This document shows positions 1 to 63,770 of a stretch of 64,000 nucleotides of DNA, piece by piece; the stretch's first letter is position 1, and each line of letters starts with the position of its first letter. A program made the position numbers and the translations under genes. The stretch is from the NCBI RefSeq assembly GCF_006345805.1, contig NC_043004.1:38750001-38814000 (forward strand), read 5' to 3'. A model generated the notes under the pieces. That model did not search any database, had not been told where the DNA came from, and saw nothing but the letters and a program-made list of their open reading frames with translations. Source of the DNA: Octopus sinensis. Taxonomy: Eukaryota.

Positions 1-404
1 TCATGATCCTTCAATAAACAAACAGAGCTGTTATAAAGAAATATACAATGTTACACTCTAGAGAAAGTATAATATATAAAACTAAACAAATGTTTTGCTG
101 ATCGGAATGAGCAGTATGCTTTAAGATGATATATTCCAGAAAGTCCACATAACATCTTCAGAAATCATTTCCTCCCTCTGTAGCACTAAAAACATGGGGG
201 AAGTCGTATTGATATTAATATTCCTTGTCAGGCAGCATCATCTGGTTGAACATAGACTATTTCACACAGCATTTCTACATTCGTAGAAATGTTCACTATT
301 CAAAATAAACTACTAACTGTCTATGTTTCAAAAAAAAAAAATCATGTCATCATGTCATCATCATAAACTTTGTATGACTAAGGTTCAATGATAATTTAAC
401 TCAC

Positions 405-498
405 CTGTTAGATTCCGAAGATTCCTTAATGGTATCAAATGAATGTCGTCTTCAGAATAGGAGGACATATCACTTCCGCCGAAACATTTCATGAAATC
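405..498 (-). CDS. Internal coding exon of the predicted type II membrane protein (DFMKCFGGSDMSSYSEDDIHLIPLRNLRNLT)
   Basis: Minus strand: acceptor TTTTTCTTGAAG at 499-500 and donor CAG|GTGAGT at 404-399. The 94-bp exon is open only in phase 0, which matches the phase-0 donor of exon 2548-2960. It ends with an NLT sequon. Confidence 0.65.
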
Positions 499-547
499 CT
501 TCAAGAAAAAGATGTACATACAAAGATATTCGTATCCACATGGGCAC

Positions 548-596
<49 letters not shown>

Positions 597-644
597 ATAT
601 ATATATACACGGGTGTACATGGTTATGTATAGAATAATATATTC

Positions 645-860
645 TTTTCTATTCTAGGGAGAAGACCTGAAATTTTTGGGGAGTGGGGCCAGTCAATTAC
701 ATCGACACCAGTACGCAATTAGTACCTTAATTTATCGACCCCGAAGGGATGAAAGGCAAAGTCGACCTCGGCGGAACTTGACATCAGAACATAAGACAGA
801 CGAAATACCGCTAAGCAATCCGCCCAGCGTGCTAACGTTTCTGCTACATCGCCGCCTTAG
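645..860 (-). mobile_element. tRNA-derived SINE, family B (head TAAGGCGGCGA..., central GCCTTTCATCC-TTCGGGGTCGATAAATTAAG)
   Basis: Collinear with the copies at 53991-54560 and 51945-52140. Confidence 0.8.
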
Positions 861-953
861 TATAGAATAATATATTACTCAAAGAAATTCCAGCCTTGTC
901 TGATTTTTACATTTCATTTACAATCTTATGATGATATAGTATAAGATAATATA

Positions 954-1193
954 ATTCAATGAACTTATAGAATATTAAATATCCGTTCTGATTGAACTAG
1001 TACTTTCATGCATTAAACTATGCAATCTTCAGGTTCATGTAGTAGTGGTGACCGTTATGCTTTACAATTCATAACTGAAGTGAGATGGCTAACTGTCATT
1101 ACTACTACACGAGCCTGAAGATTGCATCGTTTAATGCATCAAAGTACTAGTTCAAACAGGATGGACATTTAGTATTGTATAAGTTCATTGAAT
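954..1193. mobile_element. MITE with about 100-bp terminal inverted repeats and TA flanks (Tc1/mariner/pogo-type)
   Basis: 952-1052 is the reverse complement of 1095-1195 with about a dozen substitutions. Spacer about 42 bp. TA at both ends. Confidence 0.75.
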
Positions 1194-1195
1194 TA

Positions 1196-1542
1196 GAGGA
1201 GGAGGAGACCCCCTTCGGTCATGAATGACCATGGGATTGCACCTAGAAAGTTACCCTCCGAGGCACAAGTCCGGGCAAGGTTTTTTATGGAAGACCAGCA
1301 GTCGCCCATGCATACCAGCCTCTCCTCTCCATGCCACTGATGTTATCCAAGGGAAAGGCAAAGACCGATGCAGCTTGGCACCAGTGACATCACAACTCAT
1401 TTCTACAGCTGAGTGAACTGAAGCAACGTGAAATAAAGTGTCTTGTTCAAGAACACAACACGCAGCCCGGTCCGAGAATCGAACGCACAACCTCACGATC
1501 GTAAGCTCGACGCTCTAACCACTGAGCCATGTGCCTTCACTG
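1196..1542 (-). mobile_element. tRNA-derived SINE, family C (CORE/V-like body), with 14-bp TSD AGTTCATTGAATTA
   Basis: A-box TGGCTCAGTGG and B-box GTTCGATTC on the minus strand. The direct repeat at 1182-1195 and 1543-1556 flanks the copy. A second copy is at 3295-3604. Confidence 0.85.
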
Positions 1543-1552
1543 AGTTCATTGA

Positions 1553-1655
1553 ATTATATTATATTATATTATATTATATTATATCATATCATATTATATT
1601 ATATTATATTATATTATATTATATTATATTATATTATATTATATTATATTATATT
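1553..1655. repeat. (ATATT)n pentanucleotide microsatellite
   Basis: Direct reading. Confidence 0.95.
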
Positions 1656-1929
1656 ATTGTAAGATTGTAAATAAAACGCGAAAATCAAAGTTGGAATTTC
1701 TTTCAGTAATATATGTGTGTGTGTGTGTGTATGTGGGTGTTTGAGTGAGTGTGTGTATGTTGGCGTGCATGTGTGTGTGTGAGTGTGCGTGTGTGTGTGT
1801 GCGTGTGTGTGTTTGTGCGCGTGTCCTTGATATTCGGGAATATATGGGATCAGCATCTTAAATCCTCTTATCGAAACAGTTATTAACTGAGATTGCCGTT
1901 CTGCTCTTTGGAAATATACATAGACATAC

Positions 1930-2113
1930 GCATACACACGCATACACATACACACATACACTCACACACACACATACACTCACACACACACACATACACT
2001 CACACACACACATACACTCACACACACACATACACTTACACACATACACTCATACACACCGATACGCAGCAATGCACACCGACTGATACACACCGACACA
2101 CACACACATCCAA

Positions 2114-2153
<40 letters not shown>

Positions 2154-2164
2154 ATCATTTTAAC

Positions 2165-2233
<69 letters not shown>

Positions 2234-2250
2234 CGTGGTGGTGGTGGCAG
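1930..2250. repeat. Compound microsatellite (CA)n-derived / (TA)n / (TAG)n / (TGG)n
   Basis: Direct reading. It is the source of several spurious ORFs. Confidence 0.9.
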
Positions 2251-2547
2251 TACTATCAGCAACTCGGAAAATAATATTTAGTAACAAGCAATGAAAAAAA
2301 AGACACATCACAATATAATCAACTAGCATTAAACAGCAAAATGAACTAAATATGTAACGGAAATTTACTAAAATATTAGTACACACTGACACAGGGCTTA
2401 GCAAATGGCGAAACAAAGTTTCATGTCATTTCCACCGGCTACCATCATATCAAACAACCAATTCTCCATTCATCCAACCAAAGATAGCTATCTGACTCAC
2501 ATGGGCAACTACAATACCGTGATTAGATATGCAATGGCTCCCCCTAC

Positions 2548-2895
2548 CGGACAACTACAGCCGTGCACTCGAATGGCTCCGGTGATTATCAGCGTGAGTG
2601 CAATACACATGAGTAGACATCCTGAACAGAGGACGACAAGTTCCCGTCGACGAAAGGGCAGGGAAAAATGTCTGTACGATATCTTGGGTACATATTTTTT
2701 GTGTGCGTTGAATTTGTTTTTGCCTCGGTAATATCCGTCTTCGTCTTCAGCAAATACCGGAATGTGATCGGGTCGTTCAACACGATCGGGTGTTATCAGT
2801 GATTCATACGTTGCTGCCGATGGCGTAACCAGGGATTCGTACGTCGCCGCTGATTGGTTCACATCTACTGACACAGTACCAGCGTCTTTCTCCAT
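2548..2895 (-). CDS. First coding exon of a predicted type II single-pass membrane protein (exon 2548-2960 including 65 nt of 5'UTR)
   Basis: Strong acceptor TTCTCTCCTCTTTTCTAATTTCAG at 2961-2962. In-frame TAA 18 nt before ATG 2895. 116 codons lead to donor CCG|GTAGGG (2547). RRR precedes the hydrophobic stretch ELVVLCSGCLLMCIALTLIITGAI. An internal 11-aa repeat has diverged almost only at synonymous sites. Confidence 0.8.
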
Positions 2896-3037
2896 TGCGC
2901 TGATTTCTGCTTATTTTGATGTCCGTATTTTCTTATTATTATTCTCAAAAAAAAATTTATCTGAAATTAGAAAAGAGGAGAGAATTTTAAACTATAGTAT
3001 ATATCACATAGTAAAAAAAAATAAGGAAGACTTCTTC

Positions 3038-3190
3038 AATATAGATAATGTCAACAGCATCATAAATAAATGTTTGAAAATATCATCACGCTGTAATATA
3101 ACACACGAGGCATGATATCGTAATCAGAACTATGTACAATGCAAACATAACATACAAAGCATAATGATCAGAACAAGACAAAGGCTGTGT
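3038..3190 (+). repeat. About 150-bp sequence duplicated at 7155-7307
   Basis: Ungapped match with about 8 substitutions, both copies ending in a (TG)n tract. Confidence 0.85.
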
Positions 3191-3294
3191 GTGTGTGTGT
3201 GTGTGTGTAGTACGTGATTGAAATCGTTATATTACTTTCTCTTTATCTTTTACTTGTTTCAGTCATTAGCATTTGCTGTGAAAAAAGCCCCACC

Positions 3295-3604
3295 TGCTCT
3301 ATCGGTCATGAATGACCATGGGATTGCACCTAGAAAGTTCTCCTCCAAAGTTGTTTATGGATGACCAACCGTCGCCTATGCATACCAGCCTCAACTATCC
3401 AGGCCACCGATGTTATCCCAGGGAAAGGTTAAAGGCTATAACATCTTGGCGCCTGTGACGTCGCAACTCATTTCTGCAGTTGTGTGAACTGGAGCAACGT
3501 GAAACAAAGCTCAAGAACTCAACACAGAGCGCTGTCCGAGCATCGAACTCACTACTTCATGATTTTGAGCCCGAAGCTCTAACCACTGAGCAATGAGCCA
3601 TCAC
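3295..3604 (-). mobile_element. SINE family C copy
   Basis: Collinear with 1196-1542. Confidence 0.8.
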
Positions 3605-3748: not shown

Positions 3749-4153
3749 TTACTCTCTTTTTACTCTCTTTTACTTGTTTCAGTCATTCGACTGCGGCTAT
3801 GCTGGAGCACCGCCTTTAGTCGAGCAAATCGACCACGGGACTTATTCTTTGTAAGCCCAGTACTTATTCTATCGGTCTCTTTTGCCGAACCGCTAAGTGA
3901 CGGGGACGTAAACACACCAGCATCGGTTGTCAAGCAATGCTTGGGGGACAAACACAAACACACACACACATATATATATACATATATACGACAGGCTTCT
4001 TTCAGTTTCCGTCTACCAAATCCACTCACAAGGCATTGGTCGGCCCGGGGCTATACCAGAAGACACCTGCCCAAGATGCCACGCAGTGGGACTGAACCCG
4101 GAACCATGTGGTTGGTAAGCAAGCTACTTACCACACAGCCACTCCTGCGCCTA
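3749..4153 (-). mobile_element. tRNA-derived SINE, family A, full length (head AGGCGCAGGAGTGGCTGTGTGGTAAG, CORE-like TTGGGCA-GTGTCTT, internal (TA)n(CA)n, tail (GAGTAAAA)n)
   Basis: More than ten collinear copies in the window. Pol III A/B-box-like head. Confidence 0.9.
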
Positions 4154-4288
4154 CTAGGATTACTAACTTTTTACCAAAAGGGTTGACTAGAACAAGTCGA
4201 TTTCTAGTGCTTTCCTCAAGAATGCAAAGCAAGAAATTGAGAATAATATGATCGTGAATGCAATGGCTAACGACCAAGTCACTCACCT

Positions 4289-5081: not shown

Positions 5082-5459
5082 TATATCTTGTATATCATAC
5101 ATACATGGTGGCTTCCCCCTCGTTATCGAGTATGGCCATTGCACGAAGCTTAATCAATGTTGTTATCGTGCAATGCCTGTTCAAGAAGATATTTTTTTAA
5201 GTGAGGAAAGGCTGTGCACTGAGTCAATCCCACTCACTAAGCAACAGCAGCCATAATCCGAAAAGAAGAACAAGTCAACGTCATCGGTAACCACTGAGCC
5301 GCAGGTTTTATGTCGGAGTTATCCCAGTTATCTGAGTTGCCTTCTCCTAGAAGGATGCCCTGACAAAGGCTAGGAGTCCTTCACTCCCAATGGTTTAACT
5401 GCGCGATCGGGTATTCAATCCGATTATTTATATGTCCCCGCGCATGATACAGCTTTAAG

Positions 5460-5655
5460 ACATTTATTGGATGGTCGTTGACTCTCAAGAGTTCCTCCGC
5501 CCTTTGACGGGCTTTGTTTTCCATCCCGCAGAGTGACCAATAAACACCCTCCTCACCAACCTTGGTGGGGTTGCCGGTTTAGTCGCCGACGACCCGACCA
5601 TGCAACAAGTAGTACTGGGTTACATGTTACCAGTTGCACTCGAAAGTGACCTGAC
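5460..5655 (-). mobile_element. Probable RTE-like LINE 5' UTR fragment
   Basis: GC-richer block with GGCGACTAAACCGGCAACCCCACC on the minus strand, resembling RTE leaders. Recognised from memory only. Confidence 0.3.
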
Positions 5656-7307: not shown

Positions 7308-7896
7308 TTATGTGTGTGTGAATCTGTGCTCGTGTGTTTGCGTAAGTGCCGTGTGTGCGTTTGTGTGTGTTTGTGTGTGCATGCTTTATATGCTATCTTC
7401 TACTTTTATACTAATACTGCAATAATGTAGTAATTTAAATTTTATTTTTAAGAAAGCCGATGTTCAAAATATATCTTATTTGAGTTTTGAGAATGATCGC
7501 TTTTTTTGTATAAGTACACTTAGACACGTATAAATATACAGAAATTCGGCTTCCATACGCACTTGAGTGACAAACTAACCTACATTCGGATATCAAAAAT
7601 TTCGTATAATATTTTCGTTATCTTATTTTAATTGAACTAAAAGTAGATCAATACTCACGCGATTAGTTGTATGCTCCCTACGCGCATCAAAACTCATACA
7701 CATAAACATACAAACACGCTCTGCGAGCACACGTACACGTGTATGTGTATATATGTATGAACATATGCATGTGGAACAGTGTTATATTTGATAAAACCAC
7801 AAACTGAAAATTACGTGCTCTGACATTTTTTTGTATGACATTTTAAAAGAATTTCTCATAAACATAAGGGAAGTCAAATTTTCAAACTCGTACATA

Positions 7897-8106
7897 TACT
7901 CTTTACTCTTTTACTTGTTTCAATCATTTGACTGCGGCCATGCTGGAGCACCGCCTTTAGTCGAGCAAATCGACCCCAAGACTTATTCTTTGTAAGCTCA
8001 GTACGTATTCTATCGGTCTCTTTTGCCGAACCGCTTAGTGACGGGGACGCAAACACACCAGCATCGGTTGTCAAGCAATGCTAGGGGGACAAACACAGAC
8101 ATACAA

Positions 8107-8204
<98 letters not shown>

Positions 8205-8366
8205 GACAGGCTTCATTCAGTTTCGTCTACCAAATCCACTCACAAGGCATTAGTCGGCCCGGGGCTATAGCAGAAGACACTTGCCCAAGATGCCACGCAG
8301 TGGGACTGAACCCGGACCATGTGGCTGGTTAGCAAGCTACTTACCACACAGCCACACCTGCGCCTA
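7897..8366 (-). mobile_element. SINE-A, full length, with expanded internal (TA)n
   Basis: Collinear with 3749-4153. Confidence 0.9.
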
Positions 8367-9487
8367 TATGTTAACACGTCTTTTATTTTATTTTCTTATC
8401 TGTCTCCCGAAGATTGGTGAGGAGATAGAATCGTAAACGCGTCGAACAAATTGCTCAGCGGCATTTCTTCAAACTTTTTATAATTTAAGTTTGAATTCCA
8501 CCGACGTCAACAGTGCCTTTCAACCTTCTTGACTTCCTTCTTCCTTCTCGAGTTCATTTTGCTGTTTAATGCTAGTTGATTATATTGTGATGTCTTTTCT
8601 TCTACTAGTATACGAAGTTAAAAAATTTTTAGTTACGTAGAAATTATGTAAAAAAACTGCCGTTCAAACCGAAAAGATCCCAATTCTCTCTCTCTCTCTC
8701 TAAATACAAATAAGTATAAACTCTAAGAAATCTTCTGAGACCTATTTTCACTTATTAAGTAAAGGACATGAATTCAGATATTTCAGGTAAAATAAGATGT
8801 ATAGAATGACGTACACAAGATCTCTCTTGGATGGAGAGAGAAAAGAAATACCTAGCAGCAAATGTTAGCAACTCTTGGAGAAAACTGTCGACGTTCTGTT
8901 GAATTTCAGAATTTAATTTGCATAAAATTTGACTTTCATGCTTAAGGGGAAATTATTTCTTTGTTACACGAGAAAATGGTAGCAAATGACGTTTTACTCA
9001 GATTAGCTTGCATCATTAAGTGTAGCTTTCTCAAAATAGTCCATTCAGCAAAAATGAATGTTTACTAGTTTGAGCAGTTTGGGCAGGGAGTAATGAAAAT
9101 ATTTAGAAAGGTGCGTTGTGGAAATTATCTCTTGTAAATCACTAGCATTAATGTTAATTGTGCAAATAGTTTCTGAAATGTGGAATAACGTGTGCAGATG
9201 TTATCACCCATACACGCTTGTTCTTCTCAACAGGTTGTTTATTATATCTTGCATAAAACTAAACTTAGTAGAGGAGTGGATTCGTGTTCGAAAAAATAAC
9301 CGAATTCAAGGCACAAACATGTATATATATATATATATATATATATATTCACAACGGCCTCGAACACACAAGTGCAAACAAGGGAGACAGAGAAAGGCAG
9401 AATGCCACTTATATTTGAACACTATACAAATATTCCTTTAAAAAAACTTTTCTTTTAATTTTTCTAAATTTAATTATTTAATCGTTA

Positions 9488-9726: not shown

Positions 9727-9770
9727 CATATATATATATATATATACATATATACACACATATATATAGG
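9577..9770. repeat. (TA)n microsatellite
   Basis: Direct reading. Confidence 0.95.
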
Positions 9771-9932
9771 ACGGGCTTCTTTCAGTTTCCGTCTACCAAA
9801 TCTCTCCACAAGGCTTTGGTCGGCCCGAGGCTATAGTAGAAGACACTTGCCCAAAGTAACAAGCAGTGGGGCTGAGTATAGAACCATGTGCTTGAGAAGC
9901 AAGCTTCTTACAACACACCCACGTTTGCGCCT
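9771..9932 (-). mobile_element. SINE-A 5' half (head plus CORE-like part), directly downstream of U6
   Basis: AGGCGCAAACGTGGGTGTGTTGTAAGAAGCTTGC...GAAACTGAAAGAAGCCCGTC on the minus strand. Confidence 0.85.
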
Positions 9933-10045
9933 AAAAATATTGAACGCTTCACGAATTTGCGTGTCATCATTGCGCAGGGGTCATGCTAGTCTTCTCTATA
10001 TCATACCAATTTTAATATATATATATATACTGCTGAAACAAATAT
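9933..10045 (-). pseudogene. U6: Full-length U6 snRNA pseudogene
   Basis: Minus strand ...TAAAATTGGTATGATATAGAGAAGACTAGCATGACCCCTGCGCAATGATGACACGCAAATTCGTGAAGCGTTCAATATTTTT matches U6. The ACAGAGA box is mutated to ATAGAGA. Mostly transition changes, plus a small TA expansion. Confidence 0.92.
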
Positions 10046-23347: not shown

Positions 23348-23744
23348 TCTTTTACTCTTTTACTCTTTTACTTGTTTCAGTCATTTGCCTGTGGCCATGC
23401 TGGAGCACCGCCTTTAGTCGAGCAAATCTTTGTAAGCCTAGTACTTATTTTATCGGTCTCTTTTGCCGAACCGCTAAGTTACGGGGACGTATACACACCA
23501 GCATCGGTTGTCAAGCGATGGTGGGGGAACAGACAGACACACATACAAACACACATACATATATACATATACATATATACGAGAGGCTTCTTTCAGTTTC
23601 CGTCTACCAAATCCACTCACAAGGCTTTGCTCAGCCCGAGGCTATAGTAGAAGACACTTGCTCAAGTTGCCACGCAGTGGGACTGCACCCGGAACCATGT
23701 GGTTGGTAAGCAAGCTACTTGCCACACAGCCACTCCTGCGCCTA
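23348..23744 (-). mobile_element. SINE-A, near full length
   Basis: Collinear with 3749-4153. Confidence 0.9.
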
Positions 23745-26558: not shown

Positions 26559-27796
26559 ATGGCAATGAAAAATAACAAAATTTTGGAGTGGGAAATCATA
26601 CCACCTAAAAAGTGGTTAAAAGACCGTGTGATAGGACGGTGGTGTTGAGAACCTACTCCAAGGCACTTGACACCATCGCCCTATTCGAAAAGACGGCAAT
26701 TGAAAAGGAGTTGGAAGAGTATTTGCCAACAATTAAATTCATTTCCAGGGGTGTCAAATATGCAACGGTGTGGTTGCTATTTGACACCCCTGAAGAAGCT
26801 TGCAAATTTGCTAGCAAACCCCTGGAGGGTAAGGAAATCTTATTCCTGCACACGTACAAAAAAAAAGAAATTGATGAAAGCTTGGATTTGCGGACTGCCA
26901 CCCGACATAGAACCCGAGTGGATAGAGGAGACTATCCGCCGGGGTCTGTGTGACAGCGAAACTAAGCTCCTCAATGTAAAAGTTCTTCCTGCGGCTGCTT
27001 GGGTTGGGTCAAAAGCAATTTTGACCCTGTGGACCCAATCAGCCAATCTGGTTCTTCCAGATTTTTTGAAAATGGCCGGGTGCAGGTACCCGGTGATGCT
27101 TGAGGGTCGCCCCCCTAAGTGTCATCGGTGCTTGGAGTCCGGCCACATAAAGAAGAACTGTCCCCGGGAACAAAATAGGATCCCGGAACAGTTAAGTAAA
27201 ACCCCTCTAGAAGAGGGAGCGATAACGCCGAGAAAGCAGAGGACTCCTCAAACAGAGGCCGAAAGAGAAGGTGAGCAACAATGGGTGCTCACCAAAGGAT
27301 AATAGGGATGAGGAGAGGAAGGCGAATCTTCCAGCCACGGAGGAGACGCACCCTCCCTCAGTTGAAAAGGGAAAAAAAAAGAAAAAGAGGAAGAAAAACG
27401 GGACATTACCGGCTGTCAGTGTAGCACCGGAATGTCCCGGAACTACGTCGGTTGGGGTTGTGCCACCGACAAGAGAAGGAATACCGTTGGCGGAAACTGT
27501 GCCGCCACGAAAGAACTGACGTATTGGTCCTCTTCTATAGAGGAGGAGAAATTGAAAAAGTGATGGAAGAGCACTACAAGGGAGCACCTTTAGCCTTCAC
27601 ACAGGACCCCGAATGGCCTCCGCAGGTAGCTGTAGAGGCCGTGGCGTTCGACGTAACGCTTGGGCTAAAGGAGCTCAATGAAGATTATAACTTGGTCCGG
27701 GCGACGCGAACTCGGAACTTGACTACGTTCAGGGAGGCGTGGTTGATGGTGGAGGCGCGGGTACAAGCTATTTCGAGGACGATATGTAATTATTGA
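26559..27796 (+). pseudogene. Frameshifted ORF1/gag-like protein (RRM-like region, zinc knuckle CHRCLESGHIKKNC, basic KKKKKRKK tract)
   Basis: ORF-track pieces 26612-26953, 26667-27302, 27271-27519 and 27452-27796 join by frameshifts, one at the A9 run 26858-26866. CX2CX4HX4C at 27120-27161. Confidence 0.75.
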
Positions 27797-28100: not shown

Positions 28101-28490
28101 AAGTAGCTTGCTAACCACCACATGGTTCCGGGTTCAGTCCCACTGCGTGGCATCTTGGGGCAGTGTCTTCTGCTATAGCCCCGGGTCGACCAATGCCTTG
28201 TGAGTGGATTTGGTAGACGGAAACTGAAAGAAGCCTGTCGTATATATGTATATATATATGTGTGTATGTGTGTTTGTGTGCGTGTGTGTGTATGTCTGTG
28301 TTTGTCCCCCTTGCATTGCTTGACAACCGATGCTGGTGTGTTTAAGTCCCCGTCACTTAGCGGTTCGGCAAAAGAGACCGAAAGAATAAGTACTGGGCTT
28401 ACAAAGAATAAGTCCCGGGGTCGATTTGCTCGACTAAAAGGCGGTGCTCCAGCATGGCCGCAGTCAAATGACTGAAACAAGTAAAAAAAA
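28101..28490 (+). mobile_element. SINE-A remainder after the insertion
   Basis: Resumes at the TSD and is collinear to the tail. Confidence 0.9.
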
Positions 28491-28519
28491 AAAATATGTA
28501 TATATCTTTGTGTGAGTGT

Positions 28520-28680: not shown

Positions 28681-29299
28681 CATAACACATGCATACATAC
28701 ATGCATACAAACATACATACATACGTACGTACACACAGACATACGTATATAATTTCATCATCCCATAACCTTTTCCTGTCTGTTTCTCTCTCTCTCTCCA
28801 TTTCTTCCTCTCATTCGTCACTAACATTTTTTGTACTTTTTACTAGCAATGAAGATTGCAATAAATTTCTTGATCATTTTGACGCCTTCTCATATTAATA
28901 TGTAAATCTTAAAGGCGCAGAATTCTCAATATATGTGATAAGATACTTGAATGATATTGCATGTATGACAGAAACCGACATGAAATGAATAGGGAAGCGG
29001 AGATTATTATCACAGAATCAAAGCCGATACAGGCATCATCATCAAGGAAAAACAAATATCTCTCACTTAGATCTAACGCAAGGAAACTGCTGACTCAAGA
29101 TTAGAAATAAGGAATAGACAGAAGGAATGCATTCAAGCATTACTAAGTCGATTTATTCCACAAAATGGAGAAAATATTTTCCTTGTCGTAAAAAGATGGT
29201 CAATGAATTGGGGCAAGATCATTATAGCTGTGACCCTAGAGGCTATAAATCATTTGATTTACAGCTTTCTTTGGTTATTGGCTGCTCCCCAGAGCTTAC

Positions 29300-35989: not shown

Positions 35990-36660
35990 TCCAACGACCA
36001 GTTTTTAGTAACGTCGAAAATATCGTTGAAAGCACATGTCCATAATACTACGAATTATGAAGAAACAGAGATCCGGAATTCTAAACCATTCAGTTAAGCT
36101 TGGGCACATTGCGGTAATACAAAAAGTAATGCAGCTAAGTTGACTAGTCACGTGTGGAGATTGACAGCCAACTCCATACCACCTACAATCAAGTGGGGAA
36201 ATCCAAACCATATGCTAATGGATCTAGGAAGGAAGTGTAACTTATGCTAGTAGAAAGATTTAATATTCTTCTTAGATCCAAAATTCCAACACTCTACTTA
36301 AAATCCAGTTCTCGAACTTTAGTAGGTGTAAACTCATAGAAAGATTACCTTTGTAGAATTGAAGGACACCACCCGCTACGGTCAAAGTTGTTTTGTCGAA
36401 GACTGACAATTTTTCTGTTATTTCGTTCTATACGAAAGGCATTAATTGTGGTTTCTGCAATCGGAGAGGACGGGGCCTCAGTTTTATTGCTTCCGTTTCC
36501 CTCTGCTCGTTCTATTTTTGCATCAACATTTTTTTTTGCGTTTCTCTTTTCGTTTATTTTTCTTATTTTCTCAATATCCGGCGTCCTTGCCTCAAAACTA
36601 TATGTAACGCTTAAACAGCGCCTGAAAGATTACTTGGAGATACAGGCCGTATTTTATAAA
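35990..36660 (+). mobile_element. Degenerate Penelope-like element: GIY-YIG C-terminal part plus pLTR-like 3' region
   Basis: Frameshifted translation KLTSHVWRLTANSIPPTIKW...KPYANGSR..CNLC resembles the PLE GIY-YIG tail. Confidence 0.6.
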
Positions 36661-37550: not shown

Positions 37551-37624
37551 ATATAACTATATATATATTAAGATAATATATTATATATATATATATATAT
37601 TATATATAATATATATATATATAT

Positions 37625-38030
37625 ATACTCTTTTTACTCTTTTACTTGTTTCAGTCATTTGACTTCGGCCATGCTGGAGCACCGCCTTTAGTCGAGCAAA
37701 TCGACCCCGGGACTTATTTTTTGTAAGCCCAGTACTTATTCTATTGGTCTCTTTTGCCGAACCGCTAAGTGACGGGGACGTAACCACACCAGCATCAGTT
37801 GTCAAGCAATGCTAGGGGGACAAACACAGACACACAAACACACACACACACATATATATATACATATATACGACAGGCTTCTTTCAGTTTCCGTCTACCA
37901 AATCCACTCACAAGGCATTGGTCGGCCCGGGGCTATAGCAGAAGACAGTTGCCAAAGATGCCACGCAGTGGGACTGAACCCGGAATAATGTGGTTGATTA
38001 GCAAGCTACTTACCACACAGCCACTCCTGT
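37625..38030 (-). mobile_element. SINE-A, near full length
   Basis: Collinear with 3749-4153. Confidence 0.9.
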
Positions 38031-44559: not shown

Positions 44560-44798
44560 ATACTCTTTTACACTTTTACTCTTTTACTTGTTTCAGTCAT
44601 TTGACTGTGGCCATGCTGGAACACCGCCTTTAGTCGAGCAAATCGACCCCAGGACTTATTCTTTGTAAGCCTAGTACTTATTTTATCGGCCTCTTTTGCC
44701 GCACTGCTAAGTTACGGGGACGTAAACACATCAGCATCGGTTGTCAAGCGATGTTGGGGTGGGGGACAAAAAAGACACACAAACATACACACACACAC

Positions 44799-44837
<39 letters not shown>

Positions 44838-45004
44838 TACGACGGGCTTCTTTCAGTTTCCGTCTGCTAAATCCACTCACAAGGCTCTGGTCGGCCCGAG
44901 GCTATAGCAGAAGGCACTTGCCCAAGGTGCCACGCAGTGGGACTGAACCCGGAACCATGTGGTTCGTAAGCAAGCTACTTACCACACAGACACCCCTACG
45001 CCTA
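44560..45004 (-). mobile_element. SINE-A, full length
   Basis: Collinear with 3749-4153. Confidence 0.9.
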
Positions 45005-52140: not shown

Positions 52141-52359
52141 CTATATATAAGGAGATGATTAACGGAAACCTCACGACTTGTCTGCAAATAAATTACGCAA
52201 GGTATTCCGTCCGAAATGAAGTGATAATGAGAGACACTGAGCAATGATATTCACATGGAGCTCTGGACGCCGGCGAGAATCGACAGGCTGGTCTGCTGTC
52301 GGTGTATGAAGTGGGTGCGTGGGGCAACCAGGAAAACTTTCAGATATCCCTGGCCAAGT

Positions 52360-52752
52360 ATTCTTTTATTCCTTTATTTGTTTCAGTCATTTGACTACGC
52401 TAATGCTGGAGCATCACATTTAGTCGAGCAAGTCGACTCCAGAGCTTATTCTTTGTAAACCTAGTACTTATTCTATAGGGATCTTTTGTCGAACCGCTAG
52501 CTTACGGGACGTAAACAAACCAGCATCGGTTGTAAAGCGATGTTGGCGGACATACACAGACACACAAACATATACACACACATACATACATACATATACG
52601 ACGGGCTTCTTCCAGTTTCCGTCTACCAAATCCACTCACAAGGCTTTAGTCAACCCGAGGCTATAGTAGAAGACATTCGTCCAAGGTGCCACGCAGTGGG
52701 ACTGAACCCAGGACCATGTGGTTGGTAAGCAAGCTACCTACCACACAGCCAC
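52360..52752 (-). mobile_element. SINE-A
   Basis: Collinear with 3749-4153. Confidence 0.85.
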
Positions 52753-58149: not shown

Positions 58150-60157
58150 GTATGAGATCATGGAGAACCACACTAACTCTCGAACAGTGACAAGGAATCC
58201 CTAAATGCTGGTGATGTAAAAATTCGTGTGGCATTTTCCAGGGTGACTCACTGTCACACCACTCCTCTTTTGTTTATCCTTAATAATCTCTCTCAAAGCT
58301 GCTCAATGACGCGCAGTACGGGTATAAAATGTTTGATAAAAATATAAATCATCTCGTTTACATGGATGATTTAAAGCTTTTTGCAAAAAATGATCAACAA
58401 CTCAAGGGCTTACTAGCGATAGTCAAACAATTCAGTGACGACATCAGAATGCAATTCGGCCTCGATAAATGTGCAAAGGCTACCTTTATCAAAGGAAAAA
58501 TGACAGAAACATCTAACGTTAACCTGACCAACAGAATGTCATAAAAGAACTAGACCCAGCGGAGAGCTACAAGTACCTAGGGGTAATTGAAGGGAACGGA
58601 ATAAGGCATTCAGAGATGAAGGAAAGGATCAGGAGAGAATGCTATCGAAGAGTGAGAGCAATACTCAAGACAGAGCTGAATGCAAGAAACAGGATCGAAG
58701 CAATCAATGCATTAGCTATACCAGTCGTGATACAGTTTCAATATTGTTAACTGGTCAATTACTGAAATATGTCAGCTCGACAGAAAAATAAGGAAACTGT
58801 TGACAATGCATAGAATGCACCACCCTAAGGCAGATACAGAACGACTCTATCTGCCAAGAAAAGAGGGAGGCCGTGGTCTTTTGCAACTGGCAATAACAAT
58901 GAAGATTGCTACAATTGGCCTAGACACCTACCTGAAAAACTCTGAGGACTGGATGTTAAAACTTGTCTCAAAACATGAAAACAGAAAGCATCATACTCAG
59001 TCACAAAACAGGCAAAGGAATATCTAAGTGAATTCCGAATACAACCAATTTCGGAATTAGAGATAGACATACAAGAAACAAGCACAGAAAAAGCTAGGCG
59101 CATGAAAACCCGTGCCAAAACTGCGGCCTTAGATATTCTGATAATAAATGGCAAGAAAAACCTCTCTACGGCAAATACCCAAAGAGAGCGAATAATGCAG
59201 ATATCGACAAAGCCCTGACCCATCAATGGCTAATGGCCTCTGGCTTAAAATCTGAAACAGAGGGGTTTATCATAGCAGCTCAAGATCAATGCCTACCAAC
59301 AAGAAACTACAGGCCAACATATATTAAAGATCAGAAGCAGTCCACGTGTCGTGTATGCAAGCAACAAAATGAAACCATTGACTATGTGGTCTCCAAGTGC
59401 AGTCTTCTAGCGCCTACAGAGTATCTCAACAGGCACGATAGAGCTGCACAATATATTCACTGGGTAATCTGTAAAAACCTGGATTTGCCCCATGAAAAAA
59501 ACTGGTGGGAACACAAACCACCCCCAGTGCTTGAAAATGACCACATCTCACTCCTCTGGAACTTCACCATTCAAACTGACAGGAAGATAGATGCAAATAG
59601 GCCAGACATCATATTGAAAGACTTCAAACAAAGAACATGCCTGCTCATTGATATGACTGTCCCAATCGATATAAACGTATCTGTCAGGACCTACCAAAAA
59701 CTGAGCAAATATAAATATCTTGAAATAGAAATCAGCAAAATGTGGAAGCTGAAGACTAAAACAATACCTGTTGTCATAGGTGCCCTGGGAATGATAGCAA
59801 AAGGGGCTGATAGCTACCTAACTCAGATACCAGGAAACCCAAAAATGGCAGAAGTTCAAAAGATAGTGCTCATGGGAACTGCTCATATCCTACGCAAAAT
59901 ACTCTCTATGTAACTCAAGGTTTAAAACAACCATAATTTCGGTTTAAAGAGGAAGGGGAAAAAAAAAAAAAAAAAGAAAAAGAAAAAAACCTTTTTTTTT
60001 TTTTTTAAACATTCATTAGTACACAATCCCCACCCCCCAAATATATGGCACACTAGGCATAACAACAACATGAACTTCCAACCCTGTTGTCTCTTGAGGT
60101 CTCTGGGTGAGACTTGGAGCCAACTTGTACAAATATAAAGCAAAAGTCAAACATAGA
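58150..60157 (+). mobile_element. R4/Dong-like non-LTR element, 5'-truncated (copy 2): RT, CCHC and REL endonuclease
   Basis: GIFQGDSLS, HLVYMDDLKLF, CRVCKQQNETIDYVVSKC, RHD, RPDII, IDMTVP, KLSKY. ORF 59233-59913 is open. (TAA)n on both sides. Confidence 0.9.
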
Positions 60158-63350: not shown

Positions 63351-63506
63351 TAGGCGTAGGAGTGGCTGTGTGGTAAGTAGCTCGCTTACGAACCACATGT
63401 TTCCGGGTTCAGTCTCACTGTGTGGCATCTTGGGCAAGTGTGTTCGGATATAGCCTCGTGCCGACCAAAGCCTTGTGAGTGGATTTGGTAGACGGAAACT
63501 GAAAGA

Positions 63507-63541
<35 letters not shown>

Positions 63542-63760
63542 CGTGTTTGCGTGTCTGTGTTTGTCCCCCTAACATCGCTTGACAACCGATGGGGGTGTGT
63601 TTACTTCCCCGTAACTTAGCGGTTCGGCAAAAGAAACCGATAGAATAAGTACTAGACTTACAAAATAAGTCCTGGGGTCGATTTAGTCGACTAAAGGCAG
63701 TGCTCCAGCAGGGCCACAGTGAAATGACTAAAACAAGTAAAAGAGTAAAAGAGTAAGAGT
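63351..63760 (+). mobile_element. SINE-A, full length
   Basis: Collinear with the reverse complement of 3749-4153. Confidence 0.9.
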
Positions 63761-63770
63761 ATGTATGTAA

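Follow-up and report, generated by a model that had tools for sequence, protein, structure and literature searches.

Vertebrate receptor chains that signal through an ITAM (immunoreceptor tyrosine-based activation motif) mostly carry its two tyrosines 11 residues apart, a distance that suits the closely apposed tandem SH2 (Src homology 2) domains of the Syk-family kinases, and tandem motifs of the SHP-2 type are spaced by about 20-30 residues. Acidic residues upstream of the tyrosines are common in ITAMs, without being universal. The hemITAM receptors Dectin-1 (CLEC7A), CLEC-2 and CLEC9A have one YxxL motif per chain, located in the N-terminal tail of a type II single-pass protein with one C-terminal lectin-type domain. 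Apart from the vertebrate FcRγ, DAP12 and CD3ζ, the described ITAM chains include Drosophila Draper, with Shark, and the oyster receptor CgIgR, which co-precipitates with the tandem-SH2 protein CgSyk (PMC6994640); molluscs thus possess an ITAM-Syk pathway. Here, we describe a gene from a 64,000-nucleotide stretch of the Octopus sinensis genome (contig NC_043004.1, positions 38,750,001 to 38,814,000; the whole stretch is referred to below as the window). The gene, LOC115215166, encodes a 293-residue single-pass type II membrane protein with a short Cys-containing stalk and a C-terminal F-type lectin domain. The N-terminal tail, predicted from topology features to be cytoplasmic, carries the sequence Y19ESL-x7-Y30ESL, which matches the ITAM core YxxL/I-x(6-8)-YxxL/I.

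The two tyrosine motifs are encoded by adjacent 33-bp copies on the minus strand. Copy a (2821..2853) encodes SAATYESLVTP, with Y19 at 2841-2839, and copy b (2788..2820) encodes SAATYESLITP, with Y30 at 2808-2806, and retains the ancestral LITP. The copies differ at 9 of the 33 bases, corresponding to seven synonymous codons and one GTT/ATA (V/I) codon. An earlier note, prepared from the letters of the window alone, had read the copies in exactly this way, and its statements on the Y19ESL-x7-Y30ESL arrangement, the following RRR, the transmembrane (TM) helix and the second exon were all confirmed when the sequence was reread. The 33-bp repeat went unlisted by Tandem Repeats Finder, whose threshold two copies at 73% identity do not reach. 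When the 85-residue tail was shuffled, the pattern Y..[LI].{6,8}Y..[LI] appeared in 0.4% of trials. The tandem peptide, identical between the copies at 10 of 11 positions, is conserved in three octopod genomes.

The number of motif copies was not the same in all relatives. Two copies, the first containing V and the second I, were found in O. sinensis, in O. bimaculoides (XP_014790257.1) and in GAB1606499.1, the source label of which is Argonauta hians. One copy (..NQ[ST]AATYESLITPERVERP..) was present in three related but distinct genomic sources (L001/L002, L004/L005 and L003) and in the P0004 transcripts, all of them cuttlefish-like, and P0001-P0004 each have a single motif copy. One copy, reading SSVTYESLIP, was also found in a full-length orthologue (P0010, 42% identity, six exons) of Solemya velum, a protobranch bivalve, and in the bivalve-like P0005. 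These single-copy orthologues display the state that preceded the duplication and bear out the origin by local 33-bp duplication which the earlier note had proposed. Its concern with both tyrosines and their spacing in orthologues received a divided answer: the two are kept in the three octopods, and the cuttlefish-like and Solemya sequences have one motif. As judged from these alignments, the ancient feature of the family is a single TYESLI(x)P motif and the ITAM spacing is an octopod novelty.

The relative age of the duplication was read from the differences between copies. Orthologous copies differ at 2-8 (a-a) or 2-4 (b-b) of the 33 bases, compared with 9-11 for the paralogous a-b pairs. 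Relative to copy a of O. sinensis, the counterpart of O. bimaculoides has 2 synonymous base differences and that of Argonauta has 8, with an identical peptide in both, and copy b differs from the orthologous b copies by 2 and 4 synonymous bases. Since the orthologous copies are alike and the paralogous copies are apart, the duplication is older than the Octopus/Argonauta split and has not been homogenised by gene conversion. The 33-bp in-frame tandem duplication took place after the split from the single-copy cephalopods and before that of Octopus and Argonauta. The single-copy species show 6-9 differences from copy b and 8-12 from copy a, and are thus slightly nearer to copy b. On the idea that the single-copy sequence is an a/b chimera, left by a loss through unequal crossover, the site pattern was mixed and uninformative. 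Between Octopus and the single-copy cephalopods the synonymous sites are saturated (proportion of synonymous differences, pS, 0.72-0.78) and the non-coding DNA cannot be aligned, which fits a deep split of the octopod/decapod type.

The coding sequence of the tail has been strongly conserved. For exon 1 of Octopus and Argonauta, a synonymous divergence (dS) of 0.92 was accompanied by a non-synonymous divergence (dN) of 0.004, corresponding to a single amino-acid replacement over the 116 codons; when Octopus was compared with the single-copy species, dN was 0.04-0.05. The 22 codons of the repeat differ between O. sinensis and Argonauta by 12 synonymous and 0 non-synonymous changes. In comparisons of the window with the single-copy species, DNA conservation sets in with the ATG and breaks off at the donor GT. 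The tail and TM segment are more alike than the lectin domain, with identities of 99% versus 95% for Argonauta and 94% versus 87% for the cuttlefish-like sequences. Purifying selection on both tyrosines and on their 11-residue spacing within the octopods is well supported by these comparisons, in agreement with the earlier note, which had deduced selection on the peptide from the pattern of the two copies. By the same measure, both copies have been frozen at the protein level since the duplication, with their synonymous sites saturated.

LOC115215166 (XP_029640203.1, P0013, 293 aa, annotated as "uncharacterized protein") consists of six coding exons over 33.5 kb, of which exons 1 and 2 lie inside the window, at 2960-405 on the minus strand. 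The fetched locus L012 (chromosome CM016866.1, GCA_006345805.1) overlaps the window over 5895 bases with 100% identity, the window edge corresponding to L012 position 5895. On this locus the exons of P0013 map to 3001-3348, 5398-5493, 8969-9103, ~27692-27796, ~29162-29296 and 36487-36570. Coding exon 1 (2548..2895, minus) specifies residues 1-116, comprising the cytoplasmic tail, the TM helix and the juxtamembrane HGCSCP, and is 100% identical to residues 1-116 of XP_029640203.1. Its open reading frame (ORF) begins with the ATG at 2895, has an in-frame TAA six codons upstream and runs for 116 codons to the donor CCG/GTAGGG at 2548/2547. The 5' untranslated part of the exon is a 65-nt leader (2896..2960, minus) with an acceptor AG at 2962-2961; the polypyrimidine tract and the CAG/A of this acceptor are kept in O. 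sinensis, O. bimaculoides and Argonauta hians. In the cuttlefish-like transcripts, an upstream non-coding exon is joined 10-11 nt before the ATG. A 76-nt block of L003 (7062-7137), ~2.9 kb upstream of the ATG, shows 76% identity to the 5' untranslated region of the transcripts and is probably a conserved non-coding first exon.

Intron 1 (499..2547, minus) extends from GT at 2547-2546 to AG at 500-499 and is occupied by microsatellites and a tRNA-like short interspersed nuclear element (SINE). It measures ~2.0 kb in O. sinensis, against 1.7 kb for O. bimaculoides, 6.3 kb for Argonauta and 8.7 kb for Solemya; in L003 its length exceeds 10 kb. Coding exon 2 (405..498, minus), bounded by AG/GAT ... 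ACAG/GTGAGT and ending in phase 1, covers residues 117-147 and the first base of G148. It encodes the stalk DFMKCFGG...NLRNLT (in full DFMKCFGGSDMSSYSEDDIHLIPLRNLRNLT), with the sequon N145-L-T, and is 100% identical to residues 117-148 of XP_029640203.1. Intron 2 starts with GT at 404-403 and occupies 1..404 (minus); coding exons 3-6, which contain the F-type lectin domain, lie past the window edge. The splice 2548/498 predicted in the earlier note coincides exactly with the junction of the RefSeq model XP_029640203.1, and the homologous exon 1/2 junction occurs in 13 contigs assembled from transcripts of a related cephalopod and drawn from several RNA-seq runs (282-aa P0004). Two papers give Sepia esculenta larvae as the material of SRR23936172, one of the source runs of P0004. 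The exon boundaries in a genomic read-through ORF (P0006) likewise agree with exon 2. Exon 2 had been doubted for its absence within 10 kb downstream of L003 exon 1; the doubt was dropped, as P0004 and P0006 indicate a longer intron 1. The transcript collection searched contained no Octopus transcript across the exon 1/2 junction, those present, P0014 and P0015, being contigs that are unspliced or spliced in part. The O. vulgaris model P0011 (CAI9726646.1; window 2610 downward) begins at M96, within the TM helix, and omits the whole tail with its tyrosine motifs; at least one proteome thus annotates the protein without its tail. No paralogues of LOC115215166 were found in the window. The six-coding-exon structure is common to the cephalopods and the bivalve S. 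velum, and the family is molluscan.

The TM signal-anchor is formed by residues 86-108, LVVLCSGCLLMCIALTLIITGAI (2572..2640, minus), which represent the top hydropathy window and the only strongly hydrophobic segment of the protein (Kyte-Doolittle 19-residue mean of 2.84) and are preceded by RRR (82-84). The flanks of the segment contain five K/R on the N side versus two on the C side, an N-terminal signal peptide is absent, and five N-x-S/T sequons and conserved cysteines of predicted disulfides are found in the C-terminal domain. The missing signal peptide, the single hydrophobic segment, the K/R bias and the extracellular type of the C-terminal domain together argue for an N-in/C-out, type II orientation, as the earlier note had maintained; the lectin fold of the C-terminus agrees with it. 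A helix at 83-105 was also present in a full-length AlphaFold model built from four sequences, which had an overall predicted local distance difference test (pLDDT) score of 38 and was unusable as a whole. The 85-residue cytoplasmic tail is probably disordered.

The ectodomain could be named only from full-length relatives, as a Pfam search with the two-exon peptide alone gave no match. A word-indexed protein search found only a genomic ORF of a related species, and the spliced 282-aa P0004 was obtained by an exhaustive search of representatives. Residues 149-293 match Pfam PF22633 (F5_F8_type_C_2) with 39.8 bits versus a cut-off of 27.8 (E 7.2e-10), and PF00754 scored 24.7 bits, under its cut-off of 28.2. 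Sequence matches in the PDB included FBP32 (3CQO, E 2.5e-14), the Anguilla anguilla agglutinin (AAA; 1K12, E 0.004) and bacterial fucose-binding modules, and the O. vulgaris orthologue is listed in UniProt as an FTP domain-containing protein. An AlphaFold model of the ectodomain, based on an eight-sequence alignment, reached a pLDDT of 82 and a predicted template modelling score (pTM) of 0.81. When this model was submitted to Foldseek, 1K12 (E 3.7e-10, TM-score 0.78), 3CQO (TM-score 0.81), the lectin domain of lectinolysin and SpX-3 were retrieved, with TM-scores of 0.73-0.81. The Pfam, PDB and structural matches together identify the predicted fold as that of an F-type lectin (fucolectin/FTP).

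The octopus ectodomain is thus homologous to the F-type lectins 1K12, 3CQO, lectinolysin and SpX-3 by sequence and predicted fold. C189/C286 and C243/C259 align with conserved Cys pairs of these lectins and would be equivalent to the C50-C146 and C108-C124 disulfides of AAA. In contrast to the known animal F-type lectins, which are mostly secreted and often built of tandem domains, the octopus protein is anchored in the membrane in type II orientation and has one domain and a conserved tail of signalling type. It also differs from them in that the H...RxDxxxxR motif is replaced and the vicinal Cys-Cys is absent. Other identities were considered for the protein and rejected. It has no domain of a glycosyltransferase or other enzyme, which disposes of the Golgi enzyme that the earlier note had set against its own proposal. 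A leucine-rich repeat protein, an idea derived from LIPLRNLRNLT, found no support, and a TNF-like ligand was excluded by the F-lectin fold.

The organisation of the octopus protein resembles that of the hemITAM receptors, as it is a type II single-pass protein with YxxL in the N-terminal tail and one C-terminal lectin-type domain, and its invariant juxtamembrane Cys could allow dimers. It differs from them in having an F-type jelly roll instead of the unrelated C-type fold, SAAT instead of the tri-acidic DEDG in front of the motif and, in the octopods, a pair of motifs in cis where the hemITAM chains have one each. With its other lectin fold and without DEDG-YxxL, the octopus protein is not a member of the hemITAM C-type lectin-like receptors. 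The analogy with Dectin-1 drawn in the earlier note is sound in that the type II receptor has a lectin-fold ectodomain, though one of F-type and not of C-type. With the ITAM chains the octopus protein shares a cytoplasmic YxxL-x7-YxxL with a Y-to-Y distance of 11, conserved in the octopods. However, this motif is located near the N-terminus of a type II protein, where ITAM chains have it in a type I protein's C-terminal tail, has no upstream acidic residues and is of recent origin, within the cephalopods, from the duplication of a single motif.

We tentatively favour, at somewhat less than even confidence, a reading in which the YESL motifs of this lectin-type type II receptor are phosphotyrosine docking sites that are read in an ITAM-like way in the octopods. 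The lectin-fold ectodomain would bind a glycan or another extracellular ligand, and clustering of the receptor would lead to phosphorylation of the tyrosines in the YESL motifs. A receptor with one motif would then behave like a tail of the hemITAM type or of the type with an immunoreceptor tyrosine-based inhibition motif (ITIM). In the octopods, the two phosphotyrosines, 11 residues apart on one chain, could be bound by a Syk-family kinase through its tandem SH2 domains. The unphosphorylated YxxL may also serve uptake dependent on adaptor protein 2 (AP-2), as in the vertebrate ITAM and hemITAM receptors; the roles in signalling and in adaptor protein (AP) sorting would be compatible and not mutually exclusive. 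The x positions and flanks (T-1, E+1, S+2, I+4 and P) have been kept from bivalve to octopus, which agrees better with a sequence-specific reader than with AP-2 alone. The literature search for octopus Syk found no relevant paper.

Several observations weigh against this ITAM-like docking. YxxL is an AP-2 sorting consensus as well, and the motifs stand 55-66 residues from the membrane, much as the signal of the transferrin receptor does. One motif is enough in most of the family, and a sister subfamily (P0007, P0008 and Ostrea edulis P0018) has no tyrosine motif and retains the tail blocks K/R-Y-V-P, D43 and P46 and the juxtamembrane TG..R.H.C. As the single YESL is ancestral and widespread, ITAM reading cannot have been the original function of the family. 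The entire tail, and not the motifs alone, is under extreme constraint, so constraint by itself does not point to SH2 docking. The acidic residues commonly present upstream of ITAM tyrosines (D/E-x-x-Y) are absent, both copies reading S-A-A-T-Y, and VTYESL of the bivalve relatives fits the ITIM consensus (I/V/L/S)-x-Y-x-x-(I/V/L). Finally, the fucose motif H-x(24-26)-R-x-D-x4-R/K is not kept in the cephalopods, where the His/Arg/Arg triad has become R/K/H or Q; they have CSRT instead of C(T/S)HT and ISKDT..HTSPQR instead of NRxDCCxxR. Because the triad is replaced, lectin activity of the ectodomain is uncertain. The Solemya relative keeps the H, R and D of the motif, not its last R, and amphioxus and metagenomic relatives keep the full motif.

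Sorting alone is possible and nearly as likely as the ITAM-like reading. The unphosphorylated YxxΦ would be read by the μ subunits of AP-2, AP-1 or AP-3 of an endocytic or recycling lectin, and the duplication would have added a second adaptor site. YESL at 19 and 30, with the TM segment from ~86, conforms exactly to the YxxΦ consensus (7 or more residues off the membrane) and stands well away from the bilayer in a long, probably disordered tail. In this respect the octopus protein resembles the YxxΦ signals of the transferrin receptor (YTRF) and the asialoglycoprotein receptor, which have a Tyr and a bulky hydrophobic residue at +3 in an N-terminal tail, tens of residues from the membrane. 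Most of the family makes do with a single motif, the motif is followed by a conserved acidic cluster (EDEDG/EEEDG/DEVEE) as in many sorting tails, and many type II lectin receptors are endocytic. In contrast to such signals, the x positions and flanks of the octopus motif have been conserved for more than 500 million years, the motif has been duplicated and both copies are constrained. The AP μ subunits constrain mainly Y and Φ, whereas T-1, E+1, S+2, I+4 and P+5 or P+6 are also kept here from bivalve to octopus. A redundant second signal would moreover be expected to drift, yet both 11-residue units are free of non-synonymous change at a dS of ~0.9. Neither argument is decisive, because the whole tail is constrained.

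We consider it unlikely that the repeat unit is instead another docking or regulatory module, such as a proline-directed Ser/Thr phosphosite (L-[VI]-T-P) or a single ITIM-like phosphatase motif, with the tyrosine spacing being incidental. Each unit contains a T-P dipeptide and its entire 11-mer is conserved; however, Solemya has YESLIPN, which lacks T-P, hence T-P is not ancestral. The ITIM consensus is matched by the bivalve V-T-Y-E-S-L but not by the octopus copies, since the cephalopod Ala at -2 falls outside it, and tandem-SH2 phosphatases usually require a wider spacing of their motifs. The further invariant blocks of the tail (D43, P46 and K-Y68-V-P70) would point to additional tail partners. 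That the tail is non-functional, as a mispredicted exon, a pseudogene or a neutral repeat expansion, is hardly credible: the tail-less O. vulgaris model P0011 and the want of an Octopus transcript over the exon 1/2 junction in the collection searched would agree with it, but conservation is bounded by the ATG and the donor GT, dN/dS is ~0.004-0.02, 13 transcripts of a related species are spliced at this junction, a bivalve has the matching exon structure and RefSeq models exist in two Octopus species.

Further features of the tail and juxtamembrane region were recorded. Residues 51-54 (window 2743-2732) read DEDG, identical to the hemITAM lead of CLEC-2 and Dectin-1, but are followed by YYRG and not by YxxL. 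An acidic cluster is kept at this position, as EEEDG in the cuttlefish-like and DEVEE in the bivalve sequences. Within residues 66-116 (window 2548-2700) and the rest of the tail, K/R-Y68-V-P70, D43, P46 and T105-G106-x-x-R109-x-H111-x-C113 are invariant in both subfamilies, and no known motif accounts for the block K/R-Y68-V-P70. C113 is apparently an unpaired exoplasmic Cys and may form an interchain disulfide.

Repeats were also recorded in the window, and no other conserved cellular gene was seen between 3000 and 64000. The microsatellites of intron 1 (551-2224) include (TA)29 at 551-607, (ATTAT)21 at 1553-1657, TG/CA-rich arrays at 1714-2059, (AT)16 at 2117-2149 and (AGT)20 at 2165-2224. 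The tRNA-like SINE is present in two copies on the minus strand, at ~1240-1545 in intron 1 and at ~3290-3600 upstream of the gene, starting with GGCTCAGTGGTTAGAGC...GTTCGATTC; ARAGORN called no tRNA in either copy. A dispersed repeat of ~400 bp has at least 10 copies in the window, with 82-96% identity, and several more in the introns of LOC115215166 (L012). Copies were located at 3752-4154, 7894-8366, 9746-9933, 23355-23744, 28101-28505, 37588-38029, 44573-45004, 52359-52752 and 63351-63761. Apparent retroelement remnants occupy 26612-27796 and 59233-59913. Among the retroelement-like ORFs, one has a CCHC zinc knuckle (18.7 bits) and another a zf-RVT match (18.4 bits), both under the Pfam cut-off.

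No paper was found in the literature collection searched on the gene or protein accessions of LOC115215166, nor on membrane-anchored or type II F-type lectins in molluscs, and a type II membrane-anchored F-type lectin domain combined with a conserved tail is an architecture previously undescribed. The innate immune receptors of cephalopods and their signalling are poorly known, and the origins of ITAMs have mostly been inferred from vertebrate chains. The family offers a natural experiment, in which one receptor has one motif (bivalve and cuttlefish-like) or two at ITAM spacing (octopods), with strong purifying selection on both states. Should the motifs be sites of phosphotyrosine docking, it would be directly testable whether the duplication replaced AP-2 or a lone SH2 domain by a tandem-SH2 Syk as the reader. 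A more far-reaching proposal, about which we are rather doubtful, is that the octopods independently made an ITAM by tandem duplication of a single, half-billion-year-old YxxL on a membrane F-type lectin, which would have turned a hemITAM/ITIM-like receptor dependent on dimers or one SH2 domain into a cis-bivalent receptor for Syk-family kinases. If true, this would provide a dated, stepwise example of the origin of an ITAM, and the octopods would possess a lectin-Syk axis of pathogen or self recognition convergent with that of vertebrate Dectin-1 and CLEC-2 and built on a different lectin fold.

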